DNA of 64,000 nucleotides, taken from the sequence record NC_070956.1; one strand, given 5' to 3'. The translations under genes were made by a program, and so were the position numbers. Position 1 is the stretch's first letter, and each line of letters starts with the position of its first letter. The notes below the pieces were generated by a model. It saw only the letters and a list, made by a program, of their open reading frames with translations. It made no database searches and was not told the origin of the DNA. Positions 2,517 to 42,513 of this stretch are shown one piece after another.

Positions 2517-5500
2517 ATGTATGTAGATAAGGATAAGCCCCAACCCCCACTGGACGAACGTACCGATCCGGTAGGGGTCGTACTTGAAGCGTTCATTGAG
2601 AACGATCGTAAAGTACAAGAAGTGACGGGTGATATCGTTGACACGATAAAGGACATCCAGAACGCACAGGCGTCAGCCACTCAGAAACTTGACAAGTTTG
2701 ATGCCGACGTTAAGGCAAAACTTAAGACCCACGTTGATAAACGCGGGGCAGTTCACGGGGAGAATAAGCACACAGTAGGATTGGGGAACAAGGATAACTA
2801 CCCAATGGCTACAATGCAGGAACATGTGGACGGTAAGGCTCTAGCTTACGCACACCCCTCCGGTCTCCGCGAGTTGGTGGAATCCAGAGTAAAAAGTGAT
2901 CCTACCAAGTATATTCCTGCTCGAGTAATACCTCTGGCTTCTGGTGGGATGTTGGGTGATATCCCTCAGTACCACATGGATTTGAGTATTGGCGAGCTCG
3001 ACCAATCCAAACAGGACCCCAATCTTCACTTAGGGGAAACCCCTTGGGAATTTAGCACCACCTCAGGCGCTCTGATATTCCCCACGATTAATAACGCACC
3101 TCACCATGGGCGATACACACAAGTCCCACAAGGAATGAACGTGTTCAGTCACGGACCTCATGGTGGGACGAAAATCCGAGTCTATAATAAGACCCTGGAT
3201 AGTCGGAGGACACGTCCTTCCTTTATTCGTGGTTGGGGCGATACTTCAGGTGCCCCTGAGCAATTAGGCACTTGTGTCAAAACAGGGAGTTCGCTCTTCG
3301 ACAAGACACACGTTATTTACCGTGAAAATAACTGGTTGCTTCGGTCCTTTAACAAAAACGCACTCCCCTCCGATGTGATAGAGATATATAAACACTATTC
3401 GAAAGAACCAGAAGGTATCTTCGAGTACGCAGAGGGATTTCTCTTTAACTATTGGGTAACACCCCTCAACGCTATCGTCCCCGGCGGATCAGTTGCCGAA
3501 CCGCATATCAAGCTGGATATGCGGTGCTTTAAAATGGACGTGGCTGATTACCGTGCCGCCCAAGGAGCGGTGAGTCTGAATGGGGAACAGCGGACGACTC
3601 TTGGGGACACCACCCAAACGTTCTCTGCGACAGTGCCCGCGCACAACAAAATGGTCTTTGGTGGTCAAGCCGGTTCCGGGATTGGTTCTATTTATATTAG
3701 GTTGAACCGCCTCTTGTCACTCCCTGCCGGGATGGAGAATGCGTTTCTTGCCAATCTGAATCAAAACCTCGTGCGACAGTTAACCTTCGCGTGGCGCAAC
3801 CGGATGAGTTACCACGGTCTGTTCAGGATCCCTGTAGGTTGGTGGAACAAACAAAAAACTAAATACTGGCACGCCTGGGTCGATTTCGAGATTATCGATC
3901 GTCCTTTCTATACTGGGCTCAATAACCAGCTTCGTGTGTTAACAGCAGATCCGTCTTGGAACGCAGTCCAGACTGTCGATGCCAACTGGAACGTGACCGG
4001 GTCAGGAATGTTCAAAGAGTACCGCGCTGACATCAAAGATAACCCGATGCACCCCTTGGCGCTCGGTGGTATCTTCGAATCCCAAGGCGGTCACATGAAG
4101 ACCTATACCTTGTATGGAAGACAGTACACTGCCTACCATCAACACGACATGGGTCAATCGCTGGATTTCATCACTAAGGGTAACGCCCCTCTTCCTCCTC
4201 CGACCCAGAGCGAGTACAGTGCCAGGTCCACCTTGAACGGTACCGGTCTTTATGGGGACCACCTCCGACACATTCCTGTCGATATCGACCAACAGACCGG
4301 TTTGGTGACGTACCTTACTCACGTTCGCGATTATCGTGATCGTTATCGGTGGGCCCGTGTGGTCATCGATGGAGAACAGGAAGTCGTCCAGGACAGGTTC
4401 TACGGGAACTACCTTGGTCCCAAAGTCCAGAAATTGGACTGGCTCCCAGGGATCAAAACACCCAGACCGTTCGTTATTTCCAACGATGACTTCCAACCCA
4501 CGATGAACATCAACGGGTTGGTCTTTACAGCCGAAAACAAGTTTCTTGGCTTTGGTAGTTTCAGAACCAATGAAGCTAACCAGGATTACCTTGAATACGT
4601 TGACGAGATTCGACTGGACGAGCAAGTTATTGCTTGGGTGAAGAGTAATGCCGGCGGGTTTACCAACCCTGATTTACTCTTCTTCTATTTCAGGGGGAGT
4701 CTGTTCTGGTTCTGTCGCTGTTCCGATCCGGGTGAATATCCGGCTGACGGAAAGGATTGTTACTACGGCGTAATAAAGGACTGTGGTGTCAAACTCGATG
4801 GTGGTGGTGCCCGTGTCATGGGTCCGAATGGTTCTATCGCTGATTCAATCACGATTAACAAATTCAACTTAATGACCAAAAATAGTTTACTGGTCGATCA
4901 AGCGGAAGTTTACGGGATAGATTCCCTCTCCGGTCGTGATGTTTACATCATGATGACTCAGCATCATAACGATTCAGGAACCCAAGATCATGACGTAATG
5001 GTCAACATGGGTCCTTTCAACAATTTCTATATTGAAATGAAGTTGATACGTTCTGGTGATGGCGCCATGACGTTTAGACCGAAGCCCGAGGCGATCGATC
5101 CGGTATTCCCTTACACAGAGAGCAATGGTTTCCAAATAGACTATGACGCACACACTCTGTACGGGACAAAAATTCCGGAAAGATTCCACGTAAACTATCA
5201 GTCCCCCGTGATGTTGAAGAAAGGGATGTGGAGCTACCGTAAAACCCCCAATAACTTTGGGTTCTTTACACGTCGACATGGGTTCATTACGATAACCGGT
5301 TGTGTAATGGCCAGTTACTATGGGACAGACGTTTATCCAATGGGATCGGTACTCACGGTTTCCGGGAAGAACACAGTGGTCAAGAAACCGGTCCAGTTTA
5401 GTCCCGACGACATCGATGGAAGTTCGGAACTGTTCGTCAGAATAGTGGGTGATGAGCCTGTACTCTACGGTACGAATTTTAATCCCAATGGTTACGAGGT

Positions 5501-8500
5501 AGAACCACATAACGGCGCTGCTCCAGCTGGTTGGGGGTCTGGTTCGAACTTCTATTACTACGACCCGGCTAGTTGGAGAAATACTTTCATGCCGGTGATA
5601 GATGGACGGCGGATGAGTTGGTATGGCTACGGTTCGACTGTACCCGTTCTTCTGGGGAAACCTGGAGAAGGACTTCCTATCAACAGGTATTACTTTGGAA
5701 CCCAAAGTACCCAGATGACCTGGGACACCGCTAAGGGAAGGGTGGTGAAGTTTGATACCGAAATAGCCACCACTGTGGCTGTAAACGGAAACGCAGAAGT
5801 GACCGGAAGTGCTACGCAGTATGTTATTCCTGCACAGTACACTGGGGTGGTGACAATCGACCTTTACAACGCCAATAAACTCATCTGGGCACCAGGACTG
5901 ACAAACCTGATCCGGTTGGGGAGTGAAATAATGGAGGTTGACTTCTCTGGTTCTGACCAGTTTACGATTTCGGCCCCACTACCAAAACGTGTCACTAGTC
6001 TGAAGCGTGCGTTCTATAAAGCTAAGGGTGCGAGTTATCCTGGACTTCAAAATTGGAACGTGACGGGCGTCACCGACTTCACCGAGTGTTTTGCTGAAAC
6101 CACTGCATTCAACCAAGATCTTAGCAACTGGACCTTCGTTATGGGGAGGACATTGCGAGGGATGTTCCAGAACGCTGTGGCGTTCAACCAGCCTGTTCCT
6201 GGAACTTGGTTCCAATACATCCTGGATTGCTCCTACATGTTTGCTGGTTCAGGTGCGTTTAACAAACCGCTAACTGGAACTGCGTTACAGTGTAAGACAG
6301 CCATCGGTATGTTCCAAGGCTCCAAAGTGTTCAACTCCAGTATCAATGGACTCAAGTTCCTGGAAATTGTGGATATCTCTGATTTCTTCAGGGAGTCGGT
6401 CGTTTTCAACCAATCCATAAATGGATTTGACGTTTCGAAGGTTGAACGCGCTGAAAGGATGTTCCAAGGTGCGAAAGGGTTCCTTCAACCCATCACACTC
6501 AACATGAAACAATGTCATTCAGTGTCAGGGATGTTCAAAGATAACCTTGTGTTTAATGCACTTGTGAATATCTCGCTCCCTATCTGTACTGACTTCAGCC
6601 AAATGTTCATGGGAACCAAGCTGTTCAACCAGAAATTGCCTGAATGGTCATTTAGTCCCAGGACGACATTGCTAGAAATGTTCAGGGGCTCCGAAGCGTA
6701 CAACCAGTCCATGGACCACTGGATGATGGAGCGAGTTGCTTCTGTTCGCGGAATGTTCCGTGATGCAGTCGCGTTCAATACTCCGGTCAAGACTTGGAAA
6801 TTCTACAAGCTGAGGGATTGTGCTTATCTGTTTGCGGCACCGAACTTTAATGCTGATGTGAATGACATCCAATGGCCTAACGACAAGACCCTGGATATCG
6901 ATGCCGGTGGTATTTTCTACGGTGCGTTGGTATTCAACAAACCACTGAATAAGTGGAACGTGAGTGCGTTTGGTCAGTTAAACGGCATGTTCAACAACGC
7001 TCCTGTCTTTAACCAGGATATTTCCATGTGGGATACCAGCAACTGTTGGCGAATGGCGAATTTGTTCCTGAGAGCCACAGCGTTCAGCGGGGACATTTCC
7101 AAGTGGGACGTCAGTAAGGTAATTGATTTCTCGCAGTTCGCTGCTAATGCGATCAATTTCAAATCTGACCTTTCCAAATGGAAAGTGAGTGCTTGTCTGA
7201 ACTTCAACCGAATGTTCCGTCATGCCCTGGCGTTCAACTCACCAATAGGTGATTGGGATGTGAGTAATGGTGTTGACTTCGAAAGCATGTTCGATGCGTA
7301 CCACATAACGGAGACTGTTACCGAACCCAGTTACGCCATGACCTTTAACCAGGACATCAGTAAGTGGAATGTAGGTAAGGGTGTCAAGTTCAATGCAATG
7401 TTCCGTAAGTGTGAGTCCTTTAACCAGGATATCTCCAACTGGAACATGGCGAATGCAGAAGAAACTGGCGCGATGTTCCAGAACTGTTACCTCTTCAACG
7501 CGGACCTCTCCAAGTGGAACCCGGGACGTTTGATGAACATCAAGTACATGTTCTATAAGGCCATCTCTTTCAACAGAAGTATTGGTCATTGGGATGTGAG
7601 TCGTTGCACAGAGTTCACCCAGGTATTCCTTGGTGCAATCGAGTTCAACCAAAACCTTAATAACTGGAACGTTTCTAACGGTACAGACTTCAAGGGGATG
7701 TTCGAGAACGCTGTCAAGTTCAACGGGACTATCGGTGGATGGGATGTTCGGAAGGGTGTAGCTTTCAACCGGATGTTCTGGCATTGCTTCGCGTTGGATC
7801 AAGACATCTCGGCTTGGAGAGTTGACTCTGGTCAAAACTTCCAGGACATGTTCCGTGATTGTTACTACTACAACTCTCCAATGAACGATTGGGGAATGGG
7901 TAATGCGATTACTTGTACCGACATGTTTACAGGTTGTCTGACGTTCAACCAGCCGTTGGATAAGTGGAATACTAGCCGTGTCACCTCGATGCAGGCGATG
8001 TTCTACAAGACACCGAAGTTCAACCAGAACCTCAATAGCTGGACGACATCCAGTGTGCTGAACATGGCTAACATGTTCAAGGGTGCGAATGTGTACAACC
8101 AACCCATGGACAAATGGGATGTGAGTAAAGTCACCGACTTTACCAACATGTTCGGCCCTATCGCCGACACTGATCCGTACGCATTTAACCAACCTCTCGC
8201 TACTTGGAACACCGCTTCTGCGGTAAACATGACCGCGATGTTCAGGATGTGTTGGAACTTCAACCAGAAACTCACTGGTTGGAATACATCCAAGGTTACC
8301 AATATGACAGCAATGTTCTATCGTTGCGAGCGTTTGGTCGATCCTGATGTCAACGGCTGGGATGTTAGTAAAGTTCAGTCCTTCCAATCCATGTTCCAAG
8401 GTTGTCCGTTGTTCTATGGTTCCCTGTTCGCCTGGCGTCCGGTGGAAGCACGGAATATGTCCGAAATGTTCCGCGATGCAGTGAAGTTCAATTCCAACAT

Positions 8501-32356: not shown

Positions 32357-32875
32357 ATGAACAACATTTCAGTTGGCCAACTGAAAGCTCACCTCAAGTC
32401 AGCGGTACTGAGGTTCCTGGAAACCGACATGATCTCTCACGGTGACGAGATCATTTCCAAGATGACCGTCAAGAACCCTCCTAAGGGCGTAATGTCGTAC
32501 GGGTCGATCGTATTCGACTTAACCGAGAAAGCCATACCCTACGCTCCATCCCGGACCATCACGGCGAGCTTCGATAGCGCTGACATGTATGGCGACATGG
32601 ATAAAGCCGTTGAAGATGCTGTCTTCCAGTACCTCAACAACGTTGGTGCAGAATCTATCGCCCTGATTCCTGGTCACGAAGTGGTCAAGAGCGGTGTCGG
32701 ATTTGAAGTGACAGTGAGGGATGGCGACATCATCCTGTACAACGCCTCCATGAAAGTTCCGGCTAACATGAAGGAAGGGTTGGACGCTGCCTTTGATCAA
32801 GCCGTTGATCTGGCCATGGTGGTCAAATACAAACGGATGGTTTCCGATCGTAGTTTCGACAGCGTGGTAATCTGA
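32357..32875 (+). CDS. Hypothetical protein
   Basis: 172-aa ORF with AAGGA RBS. Confidence 0.75.
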   Translation: MNNISVGQLKAHLKSAVLRFLETDMISHGDEIISKMTVKNPPKGVMSYGSIVFDLTEKAIPYAPSRTITASFDSADMYGDMDKAVEDAVFQYLNNVGAESIALIPGHEVVKSGVGFEVTVRDGDIILYNASMKVPANMKEGLDAAFDQAVDLAMVVKYKRMVSDRSFDSVVI

Positions 32876-32885
32876 CAATAATACA

Positions 32886-32917
32886 AACCCCTTACTCCCT
32901 CTTGGGAGTAAGGGGTT
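32886..32917. terminator. Bidirectional terminator
   Basis: AACCCCTTACTCCC-TCTT-GGGAGTAAGGGGTT between convergent genes. Confidence 0.85.
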
Positions 32918-32927
32918 GTAACTAACT

Positions 32928-33281
32928 TTATTTCTTTCCTTTATAATGGCTTTCGCCACCAACCCTAACAGCTACATACATGAGTTGGTAATAACGCCAC
33001 GACAGTTTGAGTCGGACCTCCATGTTGTATTTAAACAACTTGTCCGCTTCTTCACGACTCCACATCCCAGTTGCGTACATATAGTCATGCACTAGGGCTG
33101 CTGGGAGGTACGTGTGAAATGATGGATAGAAGGATTGTAATGCTCTTCCTGTGCTAGCACCATTACTCCTGAATCCCTTAGGGACTGTACATTCCGGTGT
33201 AACATAGTCTTCCAGCAAGACCATTGTACCGTTGGTATAGTCGAACTCTACTTTAGGTTTAGCAAATACGAACTCTGACAT
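32928..33281 (-). CDS. DUF1353 family protein
   Basis: VPKGFRSNGAS, AALVHDYMY, REEADKLF, MYVAVRVGG. Confidence 0.8.
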   Translation of the reverse strand: MSEFVFAKPKVEFDYTNGTMVLLEDYVTPECTVPKGFRSNGASTGRALQSFYPSFHTYLPAALVHDYMYATGMWSREEADKLFKYNMEVRLKLSWRYYQLMYVAVRVGGESHYKGKK

Positions 33282-33309
33282 AATGACCTCTGTTTAATGT
33301 GCAAATGAT

Positions 33310-33334
33310 TTCAGAGGTATATTATCTTAGTGGA
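33310..33334 (+). promoter_or_regulatory. Putative phage early promoter (copy 4, variant)
   Basis: TTCAGAGGTATATTATCTTAGTGGA, ~30 bp before 33366. Confidence 0.6.
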
Positions 33335-33365
33335 TAAACTAATTTAATTTTTGTGAGGACCTATT

Positions 33366-34376
33366 ATGTTACCCATTATTGTTGGTGGTATCGCTCTGGC
33401 TGCAATCTTCGGTGGTAAGAAAGCATATACTGGACACAGGAAGAATGAAAGCGCTGAGGAATTGCTCACACTATCAGAGACTTGTCGAGTAGAGAGCGAA
33501 GAGAGTATTAAGCGTTCATCCGAATCACTGGATGAACTCATTAACAACTACACACTGTTCTGTTCTGAATTTGGGAAGGAAATCAATTCCTTTACTATAT
33601 TGGCTAAAGAAGTGACCGGTGTTCCTGTCACAGAGCTTAACCTGAACATTAAGTATGATGACCTGGTTATCGCAACCAACTACGGTGAAGTTGCTAAGAG
33701 TATCGCGACAACAATTTCAGGTGGCGTACTCACTGGCGCACTGATGGGGTTTGGCGGTTGGGGGAGTATGTTGTCTCTAGGCGTCGCTAGTACAGGCACA
33801 CCCATTTCCGCGTTAGCTGGTGCGTCGGCTACCAACGCAGCCCTGGCTGCATTTGGTGGTGGTAGTCTGGCTACTGGCGGTTTGGGTATCGCCGGCGGTG
33901 TAGCCAGTCTGTCCGGAATCACTGTAGTTCCCGCTCTGGCAGCAATGGGTTGGAAATATGACCGTGACGCCACCGCTAAATTAGATAGTGCGCTTAATGT
34001 GGCCGAGCCCGCTTTAGAATTGCGCGAGAATGCCAGGAAGCTCGATACGTTCGTTACCGAATTAGAAGAGTACATCGGTTTGGTAATGACCGCGCTAACC
34101 AGAATCCGCGAAGTCTTTGGTGAATACCACGAAGCACTGCGTAATCTCGATATTCTTATAAAAGAACGTCGAGTAAGCGAAATCGTGGAAGATGAAGAAA
34201 AACGCATCATTTCGAACGCAATGAACCTGGGTCAGATCGCAGCCAAGATCATGACCACACCTCTGCTGGTCACTGAAACTGTAGACAACGAGCTTGTCAT
34301 CAAGAAGAATGATGACGACCTCCCTGAAATAAATTGTGATGGTTTCATGGCTATAATGGAGAGTGCTAATCCCTAA
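33366..34376 (+). CDS. Coiled-coil protein with long glycine/alanine-rich hydrophobic hairpin (alpha-pore-former-like)
   Basis: N-terminal hydrophobic MLPIIVGGIALAAIFGG; central GVASTGTPISALAGASATNAALAAFGGGSLATGGLGIAGG flanked by amphipathic helices. Confidence 0.65.
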   Translation: MLPIIVGGIALAAIFGGKKAYTGHRKNESAEELLTLSETCRVESEESIKRSSESLDELINNYTLFCSEFGKEINSFTILAKEVTGVPVTELNLNIKYDDLVIATNYGEVAKSIATTISGGVLTGALMGFGGWGSMLSLGVASTGTPISALAGASATNAALAAFGGGSLATGGLGIAGGVASLSGITVVPALAAMGWKYDRDATAKLDSALNVAEPALELRENARKLDTFVTELEEYIGLVMTALTRIREVFGEYHEALRNLDILIKERRVSEIVEDEEKRIISNAMNLGQIAAKIMTTPLLVTETVDNELVIKKNDDDLPEINCDGFMAIMESANP

Positions 34377-34387
34377 TAGGAGTAAAT

Positions 34388-35962
34388 ATGCAAACTCAAA
34401 CTTATGATTGGACTGGTGAGTTCAACAAAATGATGTTAAACAGTCTGATCACAACGTTTGGATTAGACCCAATGTTGTTTGATGACAAACGGGGCGGTAA
34501 CGTTACCACTCTCCACAATGTTCGTTCAGAAGGTCTTGTAGCTGGAGAACATCATCGTGAACTGATAGCGAATAAGCCAGGGTATGACGCACACGCCGCT
34601 CATAACGTTAAGGAATTCCTTGACGCTAAAGCCGAACTCAAGGTATTGCGTAAAAGCGGTGCAGAGATCCAGGATGCTTACTCGGATCAAATCCTTAACA
34701 ATTCCAGAACTGACCTGGATCACATTGTCTCTGCTAAGGCGATTGATGCGGATCCGGCAAGAATCATTTCTGGATTGAACGTAGGTGAACTTGCCGCTAT
34801 AGAGGAAAACCTCACTCCTACCTCTGCAAGTATTAACCGTTCTAAAGGCGCTGATTCCGCTGATGAGTTCGAGAAGCGTATTAAACGTGATCAGAAAGTC
34901 AGGGATAAGTTCAGAGCGAGTATCGCTGGGAGAACAGATCTCTCCAAGGAAGAACAGCAAACCCTTAATCTTTACGATCAACAAGAGATGATCGATTTCG
35001 ATAAGATGCGGGAGCTTGAAGCAAAGGCCAATAACGCTCGTCAACGTAAAGAGGACGATGCTTATTATGCGAGTGTGGACTTTGCCAAGCACACAATCAA
35101 GGACGCCGGTATTAGCGGTGTAAAGAACGGGACCAAGTTGGTACTCGGCACTTTGTTCACTGAACTCTGGTTTGAACTTAAAGCAGGCATCCCCGAGATC
35201 TATAAGAAACATTCCGGACATTTCGTTCTCGTTAACTTTATGTCTGATGTTCGTGATCTCCTGGATAAATGCTGGGAACGGATCATGGTTAAGATAGCTG
35301 AGGTTCCGGCGTTGTTTATGAACGGCTTGTTCTCTGGTGTAATTACCAGTGTAACGACCACCATAGTTAACAAGGCCACCACTACCGTTAAGCTCTTTGG
35401 TCGTTTCTTCAGAACGATCTTTGATGCCATTATCGCCAGTATCAAAATGATTGTATTCCCGCCAGCAGGTATGAAGGCTAGCGAACGCGCCCAAGGTGTT
35501 GTGAACATCCTGTCAGTAGCAATCGCTGGGTGCGTAGGGATCGCCGTTAATGGTGCTGTAAATGCCAGTTACACAGGTCCCTTCGCAGAAGAGGTTGGTC
35601 TCTTCCTGGGCATGCTTGCCACGGGTATTGTAACTATTACTTGTGGCTATTTCATTAACCATTCACCAACAGTTCAAAAGTTCTGGAATTTCTTCAACCA
35701 TTTCAAATCAACAGAGGTGCAAACTCTCGAACATACTAATATGCTTAATGAGAAGTTAAATAAGTTGTTCGAGGATATCGCTGAAGTTGAAATGGGGCTG
35801 GATGCAGAAGAACTTTCACAGTTTGTTTCATCCTTGCGTGGAAGCAGTACTGAATCTGATCGCACTCAAGTACTGAAAGTACAGATCGAGAAGATGGGTA
35901 TTGACTCACCATTCATCCCAGGAGATATCGAATCCATCGATTCCTGGTTAGCAACACTTTAA
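34388..35962 (+). CDS. HNH/His-Me-finger nuclease-like domain with C-terminal membrane helices
   Basis: DLDHIVS...ENLTPTSASINRSKG; hydrophobic AIAGCVGIAVNGAV / VGLFLGMLATGIVTITCGYF. Confidence 0.6.
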   Translation: MQTQTYDWTGEFNKMMLNSLITTFGLDPMLFDDKRGGNVTTLHNVRSEGLVAGEHHRELIANKPGYDAHAAHNVKEFLDAKAELKVLRKSGAEIQDAYSDQILNNSRTDLDHIVSAKAIDADPARIISGLNVGELAAIEENLTPTSASINRSKGADSADEFEKRIKRDQKVRDKFRASIAGRTDLSKEEQQTLNLYDQQEMIDFDKMRELEAKANNARQRKEDDAYYASVDFAKHTIKDAGISGVKNGTKLVLGTLFTELWFELKAGIPEIYKKHSGHFVLVNFMSDVRDLLDKCWERIMVKIAEVPALFMNGLFSGVITSVTTTIVNKATTTVKLFGRFFRTIFDAIIASIKMIVFPPAGMKASERAQGVVNILSVAIAGCVGIAVNGAVNASYTGPFAEEVGLFLGMLATGIVTITCGYFINHSPTVQKFWNFFNHFKSTEVQTLEHTNMLNEKLNKLFEDIAEVEMGLDAEELSQFVSSLRGSSTESDRTQVLKVQIEKMGIDSPFIPGDIESIDSWLATL

Positions 35963-35981: not shown

Positions 35982-36440
35982 ATGAAAAAGATTGTTATTG
36001 CTAGCGCTTTTGTATTTGGTTCATTTGCAGTTCAAGCCGCTGACGTAGCCGTGTTGGGTGGTGGAATGTCCTATCACTTCAAACATGAAGGTCAGAACCA
36101 GGTACATCCCAGCACCGGGGTACAGATCGATAACTTCTCCGTTCTGTACACCACCAAGAACTCCATTGAACTCCCGTCCCTCCAGGTAGCTTATGGGGAC
36201 AACTTCTTTGAATCCAAAGTTGTTGACTTCGGATATCGGGTTGGCCTTGCCACTGGGTATCGTAAGGGGCACAAGTACAGTAACGGTGAATACTACTACG
36301 ATGGGCACGAAATCGGAAACACTGGACTCCTCCCTCTGGTGACCATCACCACCACCATCCACACTCCAATCCCCAAACTTGACTTGGTCGCTGATACAGC
36401 ACCTAACGTAGTAATGTTTGGTTTTAAATACAACCTGTAA
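35982..36440 (+). CDS. Small outer-membrane beta-barrel, PagP-like
   Basis: Signal peptide ending AVQA; SYHF..N.VHP..G; KNS; GLATGY; alternating beta pattern and C-terminal FGFKYNL. Confidence 0.6.
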   Translation: MKKIVIASAFVFGSFAVQAADVAVLGGGMSYHFKHEGQNQVHPSTGVQIDNFSVLYTTKNSIELPSLQVAYGDNFFESKVVDFGYRVGLATGYRKGHKYSNGEYYYDGHEIGNTGLLPLVTITTTIHTPIPKLDLVADTAPNVVMFGFKYNL

Positions 36441-39546: not shown

Positions 39547-42513
39547 ATGAAGAAGTCATATCTCGCCATTCTGGTTTGGGCCGCTGTATCGGTTGCACCC
39601 TTCAACGTTACAGCGGCGAACATGAACGTCGACCAAGAAGGAACTTGGAGCCCCAATTGGAAGGATAAAAATGAAGGTGGTTACAACAACGGGACCCGCA
39701 ACCCGTATTGTAAAGATAACGAAAATGCAGGAAGCTGGGGTGCTGATGGTTGTACTCAGAACCACAAGAACGACGAGTATGTTCAATGGGGCGAAATGCG
39801 CGGGGTCGTTGCCGACATCCAAACCCTTAACACCTGGACCACCTGGAACAACGAACACGTCAAAGCTGCCGAAAAAGACATTGCGGTCATCAACGGTAAA
39901 ATCGAAAAGTTCGAATATGTTGGGACGCAAATTGCTGCTAATGTTGACGTGATCGTTGACAAAGGCAACAGTGTTATCGAAGGTGCTAAAACTAGCATCA
40001 ATAACAGCATCGACAACAAAATCGAAATCGCCAAGGGTGAAGTTTCCACCCAAATCGATAACTCTGTCACCAACATTGTTAACGGTGGGAACACCGAAAT
40101 CAATGCAAAGTGGGAGGGCGCGAAAGCCACTGCTAACGATTTTGATGAGCGTATCACTCTCAACAAAAATCGCATTGACGATCAGCAAGGCCGTATCGGC
40201 AAAGTGGAAGACGTGGCCGCTCAGAACGGTAAGGATATCAAGGTACTCAACAAAGAAGTTAAGCGTCTCGACGACGTGAAAGCTGATAAGGTTGACCTCG
40301 ATAACCTGGCTGGTCGTGTTGATGTGGTTGAGGGCGATGTTGCAGTCATCAACGGTAAAATCAACCGCGTTGAAAATGCAGGTGCTGTTGTCGCCGGTAA
40401 TGTTGATGTGATCGTCGGTAAAGCTGGCGATGTGATCGATAATCGCGTTGATGCTCGCATCGATGCTAAAGTTGACAACGCCAAGACCACCATCATCAAC
40501 AATAAGGATGGTATCAAAGCCAACGTTGACCTGGCGTACCAAGGTGCCAAAACCGATATCACCAATAACGTTTTGAATGAAATCAAAACTGGTGATAACC
40601 AACTGGTTGTGGATATCAAGAACGACGTGAAGAACGAGATCGATAACAGCATCACCAATGCTGGTAAAGATTTCACCGCACGTATCGATTCCGAAGTTGT
40701 TCGTGGTGAAACTGCTTACAATGAACTCAATGCGCGCATCGATGCAATCGGTAGCGGTGCAGAAGGTTCCCTGGGTGATCGCATTACCAACATTGAAGGC
40801 AAGATCAATAAAGCCGAAGATGCGGGTCGTGTAATCGCTGGTAAGCGCGATGCAGTAGTCTCCGGTGTCAATACCGCCAAAGATGTCGCCAATGACTTTG
40901 ATGCACGTATCAAGGCCAACGCAGGTGAGATCGTTCGTCTCGACAATCAAAAGGCTGATAAAGCAGATCTCGATGCCGCCATTCAAAGTGGTAAAGATGA
41001 AGCTGCAAACATCAACGCTTCTATTGGTGGTCTGGGTGATCGTGTAACTAACGTTGAGGGTGACGTAACAACCATCAAGCAGGATGTTACTAACATCCAA
41101 GGTGATATCACAAGTATCCAAGGTGATGTTGCAAACATCAACGGCAAGATCTCTTACGTAGAAAACAACAGCCAGGAAATCATCAATAAAGCCGGTGCTG
41201 CTGTTGACGCGAAGATCGATGTTGCTTACGAAGGTGCCAAGACTGAAGTGACCAATCTGTACGACAACGCTCGTACCGAAATCACTAACGAAATTGACAA
41301 CGCCGTAAACGTTGCTGTGGAAGGTGCTCGTACTGAAGTCAACAACAAGTATGAAACCATCAAGAACGAAGTCGTTAATGGTGATAACAACACCTACAAC
41401 TCCATCAAAGCTGACATCAGCAAAGATGTGAAGAACGAAATCGTGAACAACATTACTGAAGGTAACAACACCGTTGTAAACGAAATCAAAGATGGTCTGG
41501 TTGAAGAAATCCGCGAAGAAGGTAAAACTGTCGTAGTGGATCTCCAAGACCAAATCGATGCAGCTAATGCACGTATCGATGTACAGACCGGTCGCGGTGA
41601 GCAAGCGTGGGCTTCCTATCAGGAAGATCGTACACATGCCACCCAGCAGTATACCCAGGATCGTCAAGTTGCCGTAACCACTTACAACAACGCTCGCGTT
41701 GAAGCTGAAAGTGCTTATGTTACTATGGATGATAAGAAAGCCGACAAGTCCGATCTGGATGTATTGAATGACAAAATCGATGGTATCGCTGCCAACGGTA
41801 AAACCGACGAAGAAATCAAGGCTATCGCAGACCAAGCTGCTGCTGACGCTGTAAACAATGCCAAGAAAGAAGTCGTCGTGGCTGTTAAAGACAAAGCTCC
41901 TGTAGCTAACGAAGCTGTAACCGCTGCTAAGACCGAAGCTAAGAAGCAGGTACAAGCTAGCATTGATGCGTCCATCTCCAAAGCGAAAGCCGCCGCTAAA
42001 GACCAAGCTGGTCAGGCTGTTGCTGCTGCTAAAGAGAAAGCACGTGCCGAGCTGGCCGCTGCTATGCCGGAGCTGAAAGGTAAAGCAGAAGTTGTTCGTA
42101 CCGAAGCTGTTGAAACCCGCAAGCGTGCCGACCTGGCCCTGAAAGCCACCCAGGACAACCACACTGCAATTCAACAAGAGCGTGCTGATCGTATCCAAGG
42201 TCAGCGTGAGACTCTGCAATCTGCCAACAACTACACTGATCAGAAAGTTGAACAACTGCGTGGTGAAGTCGAGCATAACCGTCGTAAGGCCGCCGCTGGT
42301 ATCGCTGGCGTAGCTGCAATGACCAACATCCCGACTATCTCCCAAGGTAAGAACTTCGCGATTGGCGCTGGTATGGGTTACTATGATGGCGAGCAATCCC
42401 TGGCTATCGGTTCCCAAGGTCGTTTCAACGAGAACCTCACTGGTAAAGCAACTATCTCCACCGACTTCCACGGTAACACTGTAATTGGTGCTGGCGTAGG
42501 TTTCGAGTGGTAA
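39547..42513 (+). CDS. YadA-type trimeric autotransporter adhesin
   Basis: GAGGA RBS; signal peptide MKKSYLAILVWAAVSVAPFNVTAA; long coiled-coil stalk with N@d heptads and three KADKxDL motifs; ANNYTD; anchor AGIAGVAAMTNIP...GYYDGEQSLAIG...IGAGVGFEW. Confidence 0.9.
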   Translation: MKKSYLAILVWAAVSVAPFNVTAANMNVDQEGTWSPNWKDKNEGGYNNGTRNPYCKDNENAGSWGADGCTQNHKNDEYVQWGEMRGVVADIQTLNTWTTWNNEHVKAAEKDIAVINGKIEKFEYVGTQIAANVDVIVDKGNSVIEGAKTSINNSIDNKIEIAKGEVSTQIDNSVTNIVNGGNTEINAKWEGAKATANDFDERITLNKNRIDDQQGRIGKVEDVAAQNGKDIKVLNKEVKRLDDVKADKVDLDNLAGRVDVVEGDVAVINGKINRVENAGAVVAGNVDVIVGKAGDVIDNRVDARIDAKVDNAKTTIINNKDGIKANVDLAYQGAKTDITNNVLNEIKTGDNQLVVDIKNDVKNEIDNSITNAGKDFTARIDSEVVRGETAYNELNARIDAIGSGAEGSLGDRITNIEGKINKAEDAGRVIAGKRDAVVSGVNTAKDVANDFDARIKANAGEIVRLDNQKADKADLDAAIQSGKDEAANINASIGGLGDRVTNVEGDVTTIKQDVTNIQGDITSIQGDVANINGKISYVENNSQEIINKAGAAVDAKIDVAYEGAKTEVTNLYDNARTEITNEIDNAVNVAVEGARTEVNNKYETIKNEVVNGDNNTYNSIKADISKDVKNEIVNNITEGNNTVVNEIKDGLVEEIREEGKTVVVDLQDQIDAANARIDVQTGRGEQAWASYQEDRTHATQQYTQDRQVAVTTYNNARVEAESAYVTMDDKKADKSDLDVLNDKIDGIAANGKTDEEIKAIADQAAADAVNNAKKEVVVAVKDKAPVANEAVTAAKTEAKKQVQASIDASISKAKAAAKDQAGQAVAAAKEKARAELAAAMPELKGKAEVVRTEAVETRKRADLALKATQDNHTAIQQERADRIQGQRETLQSANNYTDQKVEQLRGEVEHNRRKAAAGIAGVAAMTNIPTISQGKNFAIGAGMGYYDGEQSLAIGSQGRFNENLTGKATISTDFHGNTVIGAGVGFEW

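Follow-up and report, generated by a model that had tools for sequence, protein, structure and literature searches.

A bacterial-type gene pair encoding a predicted membrane-tethered nuclease in the nucleus-forming Aeromonas phage LAh10

What is the function of two adjacent genes of bacterial type, one of them predicted to encode a membrane-tethered nuclease, in the genome of a nucleus-forming phage? We addressed this question for genes A and B of Aeromonas phage LAh10, whose genome measures 260,310 bp. The genes lie in a 64,000-nt stretch of sequence record NC_070956.1, which is referred to here as the window; window position 33366 corresponds to record position 95366. An open reading frame (ORF) check recovered both genes as initially annotated, on the same strand and separated by a gap of 11 nt:

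33366..34376, plus strand: gene A (LAh10 gp079, 336 amino acids [aa]), an inner-membrane-anchored helical protein related to PADLOC PDC-M09A
34388..35962, plus strand: gene B (LAh10 gp080, 524 aa), a predicted membrane-tethered His-Me-finger-like nuclease related to PADLOC PDC-M40B

Our analysis indicates that the pair is most aptly regarded as a bacterial candidate defense system in truncated form, carried by a phage. This relationship is obscured in the phage record, where A carries the name "putative chemotaxis protein" and B "putative cobalamin adenosyltransferase." These are propagated, misleading labels: no NCBIfam match of either kind was obtained for A, B, or 13 homologues of B, and there is no Pfam domain on record for the homologues of A or B.

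A megablast search with the window returned LAh10 at 100% identity and phages D3, D6, and D9 at 96.8 to 96.9%. LAh10 belongs to Ludhianavirus, a genus of the nucleus-forming jumbo phage family Chimalliviridae (NCBI taxonomy; PMC13678102), in line with the initial annotation, which had raised the idea that a nucleus-forming phage could shield its own DNA. Among 50,697 phage records, A or B was found only in these four phages, and the reading frames of both genes are intact in all four, which include isolates from Australia (LAh10) and India (D3). A single B fragment was detected among the 2.9 million contigs of IMG/VR, located at a contig end where its context is uninformative. Relatives of B were present in 264 bacterial species of many phyla in a scan of one genome per species, and both phage proteins matched PADLOC models, A with PDC-M09A (3.3e-16 over aa 40 to 253) and B with PDC-M40B (3.1e-31 over aa 14 to 420). 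The proposal that these are captured genes of bacterial type is therefore upheld.

The protein encoded by B can be divided into four parts:

34493..34519, plus strand: B aa 36 to 44, invariant GGxVxT.HN motif (G36, G37, and T41 invariant in 113 sequences)
34709..34849, plus strand: B aa 108 to 154, predicted beta-beta-alpha metal finger, D111 H112...N141 L142...N150.S152 K153 (from alignments and AlphaFold2)
35288..35659, plus strand: B aa 301 to 424, hydrophobic helices (from hydropathy and AlphaFold2)
35666..35956, plus strand: B aa 427 to 523, C-terminal helical, coiled-coil-like domain (from AlphaFold2 helices)

The DH...N...N motif noted in the initial annotation proved to be real. Residues D111, H112, N141, L142, T145, N150, S152, and K153 are invariant in the 13 B homologues, which share 20 to 33% identity with the phage protein, and H112, N141, and N150 stay invariant across 113 diverse homologues, together with G36, G37, T41, and N328. 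An AlphaFold2 model built from the alignment of these 113 homologues reached a mean predicted local distance difference test (pLDDT) score of 87, with values above 93 over aa 40 to 240, and a predicted template modeling (pTM) score of 0.73. The model places the motif on a strand (aa 108 to 112), a second strand (aa 142 to 146), and a helix (aa 147 to 153), the predicted topology of a beta-beta-alpha element. The phage profile phrog_1035 (endonuclease VII) matched the finger region in 6 of the 13 homologues with a best E value of 2.5e-5, and matched phage B itself at 0.0068. A whole-chain Foldseek search of BFVD returned the protein itself, plus sub-significant local matches that recurred on endonuclease VII, HNHc, and GmrSD C-terminal proteins. 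The same whole-chain search of the PDB gave nothing significant and was dominated by membrane-bundle noise, and PDB profile searches with the full B alignment and two N-domain alignments were likewise without a significant match, with 7p9k (BrxU) appearing at an E value of 1.2. When the motif region alone was searched against a database of 5.8 billion proteins, only the D3 orthologue was returned. Collectively, the conserved residues and the model suggest that the N-terminal domain of B is a His-Me-finger (HNH-like) domain, which would be expected to have nuclease activity. The D-H...N...N pattern and the predicted beta-beta-alpha element are similar to those of His-Me (HNH) nucleases such as T4 endonuclease VII and the DUF1524 proteins GmrSD and BrxU, and the motif pattern presumably also resembles that of the Cas9 HNH domain. 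B differs from the known HNH nucleases in that it is fused to a bundle of membrane helices and carries the additional invariant GGxVxT.HN motif, which we used as a family-specific search pattern. We know of no nameable counterpart in the classical HNH families for this motif, which lies N-terminal to the His-Me finger.

The membrane helices of B had been described as C-terminal, and this description needs to be amended: hydrophobic helices are present at about aa 301 to 424, but they are followed by about 100 aa of nonhydrophobic helices. AlphaFold2 predicts four helices in the hydrophobic region (aa 306 to 330, 335 to 356, 364 to 394, and 400 to 425), and the hydropathy profile supports two clear transmembrane helices within peaks at about aa 367 to 395 and 399 to 424 as well as two weaker ones at about aa 301 to 327 and 339 to 362. 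B lacks a signal peptide, its membrane helices are even in number, and basic residues lie on either side of the clear hairpin; the N-terminal nuclease domain and the C-terminal coiled coil should therefore both face the cytoplasm. In the B homologue of one bacterial locus (L004), the C-terminal 80 aa alone match PDC-M09B, the partner of PDC-M09A, at 5e-14. Since this part of B is shared with the partner of an A-type protein, the C-terminal domain may serve as a docking module for A.

Protein A contributes two distinct features:

33366..33425, plus strand: A aa 1 to 20, hydrophobic N-terminal anchor followed by a basic stretch (hydropathy peak of 1.52)
33678..33953, plus strand: A aa 105 to 196, Gly/Ala/Ser/Thr-rich hydrophobic core, glycine-zipper-like, the most conserved part of the family

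The Gly/Ala-rich hydrophobic segment reported at the outset is a genuine feature, and in an alignment of 110 sequences all 17 invariant columns of the A family fall inside aa 141 to 189 of phage A. The family has 373 bacterial matches in a word-limited search, typically of about 366 aa and often labeled "chemotaxis protein." Its members share an N-terminal hydrophobic anchor with a conserved M-P-x-P...G...K-K start, long helices, and the invariant Gly/Ala-rich core. The helices of phage A were modeled confidently by AlphaFold2, while aa 97 to 201 had pLDDT values below 50 and the mean was 61. A is a second inner-membrane protein, anchored by its N terminus, and it is not a secreted toxin given that it has no secretion signal. 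A resemblance to pore-forming proteins had been suggested for A, and we considered a pore former of the ClyA/Nhe type. The best Foldseek match in the PDB had an E value of 0.036 with TM-scores of 0.18 to 0.21 (ClyA, SmhB, and AhlB were ranked at the top), and the hidden Markov model (HMM) of NheC scored 14.7 bits against a cutoff of 420 (E value of 0.014). Neither the fold nor the HMM likeness is significant, and the pore-former idea is a lead rather than a finding. A has in common with the ClyA, Hbl/Nhe, and AhlB/SmhB toxins a long helical bundle and a central hydrophobic segment, but differs from ClyA-type toxins in its N-terminal membrane anchor and lack of a secretion signal. The Gly-rich region of bacterial A homologues aligns with the C-terminal portion of the LeoBC model, with E values as low as 5e-10; phage A matches LeoBC at 0.0019, over a different region. 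The dynamin-like Eleos system (LeoA/LeoBC) has only a membrane-associated module in common with A, which has no GTPase domain, and Leo genes are neighbors of some A-B-C loci. In four Firmicutes contigs (L014 to L017, at about 4347 to 6999), we observed another three-gene cassette, made up of genes for 282 aa and 256 aa followed by A, with no B-like gene. This suggests that membrane proteins of the A type have other partners besides B.

The initial annotation treated A and B as a self-contained two-gene system, which the comparison with bacteria does not support, given that the pair is a truncated copy of a three-gene A-B-C system plus a WYL regulator. Single homologue contexts repeatedly showed a layout in which a WYL regulator was followed by A, B, and the gene for a small CxxCxxCC protein. 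We counted these components in 79 fetched bacterial loci with a B gene, 78 of which had room for the small gene, called C here. A, B, and C were all present in 62 of the 79 loci. Two orders are conserved, in both of which the regulator (W, with an HTH-WYL-WCX architecture) is optional: (W-)A-B-C, seen in 31 loci that are all from Pseudomonadota, and (W-)B-C-A, seen in 29 loci that come mostly from Bacillota and Bacteroidota with some spirochetes and others. In 67 of 78 loci, C follows B directly, often overlapping it by 0 to 4 nt, and a WYL regulator was located upstream in 39 of the 79 loci. Because the linkage of A, B, and C survives the rearrangement of gene order, the three genes appear to form a functional three-component unit. 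The C protein has about 88 aa, eight conserved cysteines, including CxxCxxCC, and weak matches of the YcgN/YkgJ type; no PADLOC model matched it. In E. coli A41 (L101), the gap after B, which is the usual site of C, has no annotated gene, an observation that concerns the annotation only, as the gap was not searched for C.

The B family is large, with 2,722 cluster representatives at an E value of up to 1e-3 and 651 at up to 1e-30 in an exhaustive profile search. The host genus carries a relative as well: the B protein of Aeromonas eucrenophila is 30% identical to that of the phage, and its locus (L042) has the full W-A-B-C arrangement. The A-B pair is also present in 383 of 5,426 complete E. 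coli genomes (about 7%), and RefSeq names the E. coli B and A homologues "cobalamin adenosyltransferase" and "chemotaxis protein," respectively. In a genome-wide association study, E. coli A/B genes appear under such misleading names as chicken associated, and the cassette was not recognized (PMC12987596).

Bacterial A-B loci were found in tRNA/integrase islands and beside restriction and other defense genes, consistent with the accessory-region setting mentioned in the initial annotation. Individual A-B-C loci have McrBC or a type I or type ISP restriction enzyme as a neighbor. In the flanks of 21 loci, we obtained strong matches to type I restriction enzymes, DRT, HEC-06, Eleos, QatC, HmaC, JukA, MADS, SoFic, and other candidates; this content is descriptive only, as there was no control set of loci. 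The jumbo-phage-killer system Juk was itself considered for its WYL/HNH context and belongs to an unrelated family. WYL-domain regulators such as BrxR and CapW control defense operons, according to references cited in PMC12409362. The bacterial A-B-C genes often lie behind an HTH-WYL-WCX regulator of this kind, whereas the phage window has none. One bacterial W-A-B copy (L004, 8001 to 11054) adjoins holin, amidase, and YomU_Tube genes and is probably prophage borne, and temperate phages may therefore carry the A-B system too.

The claim that the system is undescribed holds in part. PADLOC already includes relatives of it as the candidates PDC-M09 and PDC-M40, the closest known entities, which were chosen for being embedded among known defense systems but are untested. 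The phage pair is related to them by direct HMM homology and by the defense-island setting, and the bacterial pair at L004 matches the PDC-M09A and PDC-M40B models at 1.5e-91 and 2.6e-71. However, the two phage genes correspond to components of different PADLOC entries, and the pair fits neither two-gene definition: the phage B protein has no PDC-M09B match that would provide the partner expected next to a PDC-M09A-like protein, and PDC-M40A had no match among the window proteins or those of the bacterial cassettes that we scanned. It differs further in that PADLOC has no model for C, while the phage lacks both C and, in the window, a WYL regulator.

The phage lineage captured this module and lost part of it. 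In the phage, the A- and B-family genes are adjacent, on the same strand, and in the order of the proteobacterial clade. Searches of the window ORFs with the WYL and C profiles, at E values up to 10, gave no match (for WYL, the window was the only sequence covered), and tblastn with the Aeromonas C protein found no C in the Ludhianavirus records. At the corresponding place, A, B, and the adjacent "PagP" gene are all missing from the related phage AerS_266. We attempted an empty-site comparison, but no clean insertion site could be defined because the genes flanking A and B are themselves genus specific and form a variable region. In the trees, phage B falls at the base of the proteobacterial clade (support of 100, branch length of 1.74 versus a median of 0.21) and phage A falls inside the proteobacterial W-A-B-C clade (branch length of 5.25), placements that are unsure for branches this long. 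Despite its 35% identity to the consensus of 111 bacterial homologues, phage B has retained every one of the 26 columns in which these are at least 90% conserved; for phage A, the figure is 43 of 52 conserved columns. Both genes are under strong purifying selection: between LAh10 and D3, they have 33 to 36 synonymous versus 6 to 9 nonsynonymous differences, and the ratio of nonsynonymous to synonymous substitution rates (dN/dS) amounts to 0.053 in A and 0.066 in B, similar to the neighboring genes.

Three further elements surround the pair:

32886..32917, no strand assigned: hairpin with a perfect 14-bp stem, from a terminator scan, between the convergent genes 32357 to 32875 (plus) and 32928 to 33281 (minus)
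33282..33365, plus strand: AT-rich (71%) 84-nt spacer upstream of A, which is divergent from gene 32928 to 33281 (minus)
35982..36440, plus strand: gp081 (152 aa, labeled "PagP"), starting 19 nt past B, a small envelope protein with a signal-peptide-like N terminus

The hairpin likely terminates transcription in both directions and would thereby insulate the cassette from plus-strand transcripts that arrive from upstream. Together with the divergent preceding gene, it implies that transcription of A and B would begin inside the spacer, where the promoter is presumed to lie; 81 to 82 of its 84 nt are identical in phages D3 and D9. The divergent gene itself (32928 to 33281, minus strand) encodes a 117-aa protein that matches phrog_1158, "tail assembly chaperone," at 1.8e-23, yet it sits among small nonstructural genes. 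On the other side of the pair, gp081 matches phrog_3600 at 4.6e-28 and has homologues in 41 phage records, 35 of them from Aeromonas phages that are T4-like, jumbo, or of other unrelated types. It appears to be an envelope moron that is widespread among phages of Aeromonas; its PagP label is doubtful, with no NCBIfam and no PDB sequence support. This gene occupies the place that C has in the bacterial cassettes and may be cotranscribed with A and B.

The codon usage of A and B is mildly atypical. Their G+C contents at third codon positions (GC3) are the lowest among the 33 window ORFs (z scores of -1.55 and -1.69). The excess of TTA, CTA, and ATA codons that had been noted by eye was borne out in one respect: TTA and CTA make up 21% of the Leu codons in A, compared to a mean of 6.7% (z score of 2.3), but they are not raised in B, and ATA is not enriched in either gene. 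A 988-aa ORF in the window (39547 to 42513, plus strand), which is YadA-like and is assigned to host recognition in the D3 record, contains no TTA, CTA, or ATA codon at all and has the most typical codon usage, with the highest per-codon log-likelihood (-0.937).

We tentatively favor the idea, at somewhat less than an even chance, that the A-B pair is a captured, deregulated membrane nuclease module acting on DNA that is unshielded in the cytoplasm. An ancestor of Ludhianavirus would have acquired A and B together from a proteobacterial W-A-B-C cassette, after which the regulator and C would have been lost and the pair placed under phage transcription. B would be an active nuclease at the cytoplasmic face of the inner membrane, and A would probably associate with it through the helical and membrane parts of both proteins; in bacteria, C and the WYL protein may supply control. 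The module would then attack cytoplasmic DNA exposed at the inner membrane, above all the DNA injected by competing phages that do not form a nucleus, with plasmids or host DNA as possible further targets. The genomes of chimalliviruses are shielded at all stages, by the early phage infection (EPI) vesicle and then by the nucleus (PMC12908238). Because the phage genome is enclosed in this way, it would never be exposed, first in the EPI vesicle and next in the chimallin nucleus, and would be exempt from attack by A and B, a form of self-immunity through compartmentalization.

There are precedents for parts of this scheme. Lytic phages encode membrane proteins or nucleases that act on DNA other than their own, which is spared, as with T4 Imm and Sp and with T4 EndoII and EndoIV, for which hydroxymethylcytosine provides self-protection. 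The likeness of these proteins to A and B is conceptual and involves no homology, and the exemption in the case of A and B would come from compartmentalization and not from base modification. In mechanism, Kiwa (KwaA/KwaB) and Zorya (ZorAB with ZorC/ZorD) come closest. Both are complexes of the inner membrane that react when a phage alters the envelope and steer DNA-targeting effectors to the DNA coming in (10.1101/2023.02.26.530102; 10.1101/2023.12.18.572097). This is a functional analogy only, as neither A nor B matched the Kiwa or Zorya models of PADLOC and no homology was detected. In A-B, by comparison, the nuclease itself is anchored in the membrane, and there is no motor or DUF4868 component; a sensing function for A-B is purely hypothetical.

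Several observations weigh against an exclusion nuclease of this type. B has no significant match to the HNH models of Pfam and NCBIfam or to solved HNH structures, which would make it a divergent, unnamed His-Me family. We found no functional study of any A-B-C family member in the literature, and the bacterial "defense" role is a candidate role only. The initial annotation had the pair under a phage promoter, but no sigma-70-like site was detected upstream of A in a sigma-70 scan, a search with an upstream 14-mer gave 3 matches where 3.9 were expected and thus no recurring motif, and 25 upstream regions had no enriched hexamer in common. A membrane-tethered nuclease would reach membrane-proximal DNA only, and exclusion would be ineffective against other nucleus-forming phages, whose DNA is likewise shielded. 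The very long branches of the phage proteins are compatible with a change of function. Finally, almost all of the bacterial systems include C, which B might therefore require, and A and B in the phage could function in another way. To account for the missing C, one may suppose either that C acts as a brake or that phage B became independent of it. The more specific proposal that the phage weaponized a bacterial membrane nuclease by discarding both the brake C and the repressor, with genome compartmentalization as the sole immunity, is one we consider rather doubtful.

Other functions for the pair would draw on much of the same evidence. A and B could serve host takeover by degrading or nicking the host chromosome and plasmids, shutting the host down and supplying nucleotides, in parallel to the host-DNA nucleases of T4 but with the phage nucleus in place of base modification. 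The retained catalytic motif and the purifying selection would be expected in this case, and the loss of the regulator and C fits a constitutive activity. Host-chromosome degradation varies among chimalliviruses (PMC12908238), which makes lineage-specific nucleases plausible. On the other hand, membrane tethering is an odd design for the degradation of a bulk chromosome, and the bacterial relatives live in host genomes, so that an unregulated attack on the chromosome was not the ancestral mode; we regard host takeover as unlikely. Counterdefense by mimicry is quite unlikely in our view. Here, phage A and B without C would act as a dominant-negative decoy that coassembles with a host W-A-B-C system and disables it, and the host genus indeed has a complete system in the A. 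eucrenophila locus. The absence of one subunit and the high divergence of the phage copies, greatest in A, agree with such a decoy, but a decoy would not need the catalytic residues, which are among the 26 highly conserved B positions kept along a long branch. At about 30% identity to the Aeromonas proteins, coassembly would be poor, and since the system is sporadic in bacteria, the benefit would be occasional.

A role at the membrane itself, in which A permeabilizes or remodels the inner membrane (as a holin-like factor in lysis timing or for exclusion by depolarization) and B is an accessory, appears improbable. A has the glycine-zipper-like hydrophobic core and long helices that such a role calls for, the next gene, gp081, encodes an envelope protein, and the bacterial copy at L004 lies beside a holin-amidase pair. 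The pore formers that rank highest for A (ClyA, SmhB, and AhlB by fold and NheC by HMM) point in the same direction but are not significant as matches, bacterial A genes are closely tied to those for the nuclease B, and A cannot be a general lysis factor of chimalliviruses because it is not found in the others. The suggestion that A and B are passengers without a current function in the phage has very little to recommend it. The slightly atypical codon usage, the lowest GC3 of the window, and the location of the cassette in a genus-specific variable region would suit a passenger, but the idea is contradicted by the selection data, with dN/dS values of 0.05 to 0.07 like those of the neighbors. 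Both frames have also remained intact in four phages isolated in Australia and India, and the conserved core has been kept.

In summary, the A-B-C family is widespread, uncharacterized, and misannotated, with no Pfam domain, and is defined here as a three-gene unit with two conserved orders. The phage represents a natural "deletion experiment," in which A and B are kept under strong selection and C and the regulator are not, and this indicates which parts are effectors and which are control. Correcting the propagated names of A and B would help genome annotation. If the discarded-brake proposal is true, a phage-encoded nuclease would distinguish self from nonself by location and not by modification, sequence, or an antitoxin, and A-B-C would serve bacteria as a new membrane-embedded defense that cuts DNA at its point of entry, with C as a sensor or safety catch. 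The A-B pair thus offers a way of asking whether chimalliviruses use their shielded genome offensively, against competitors or the host.

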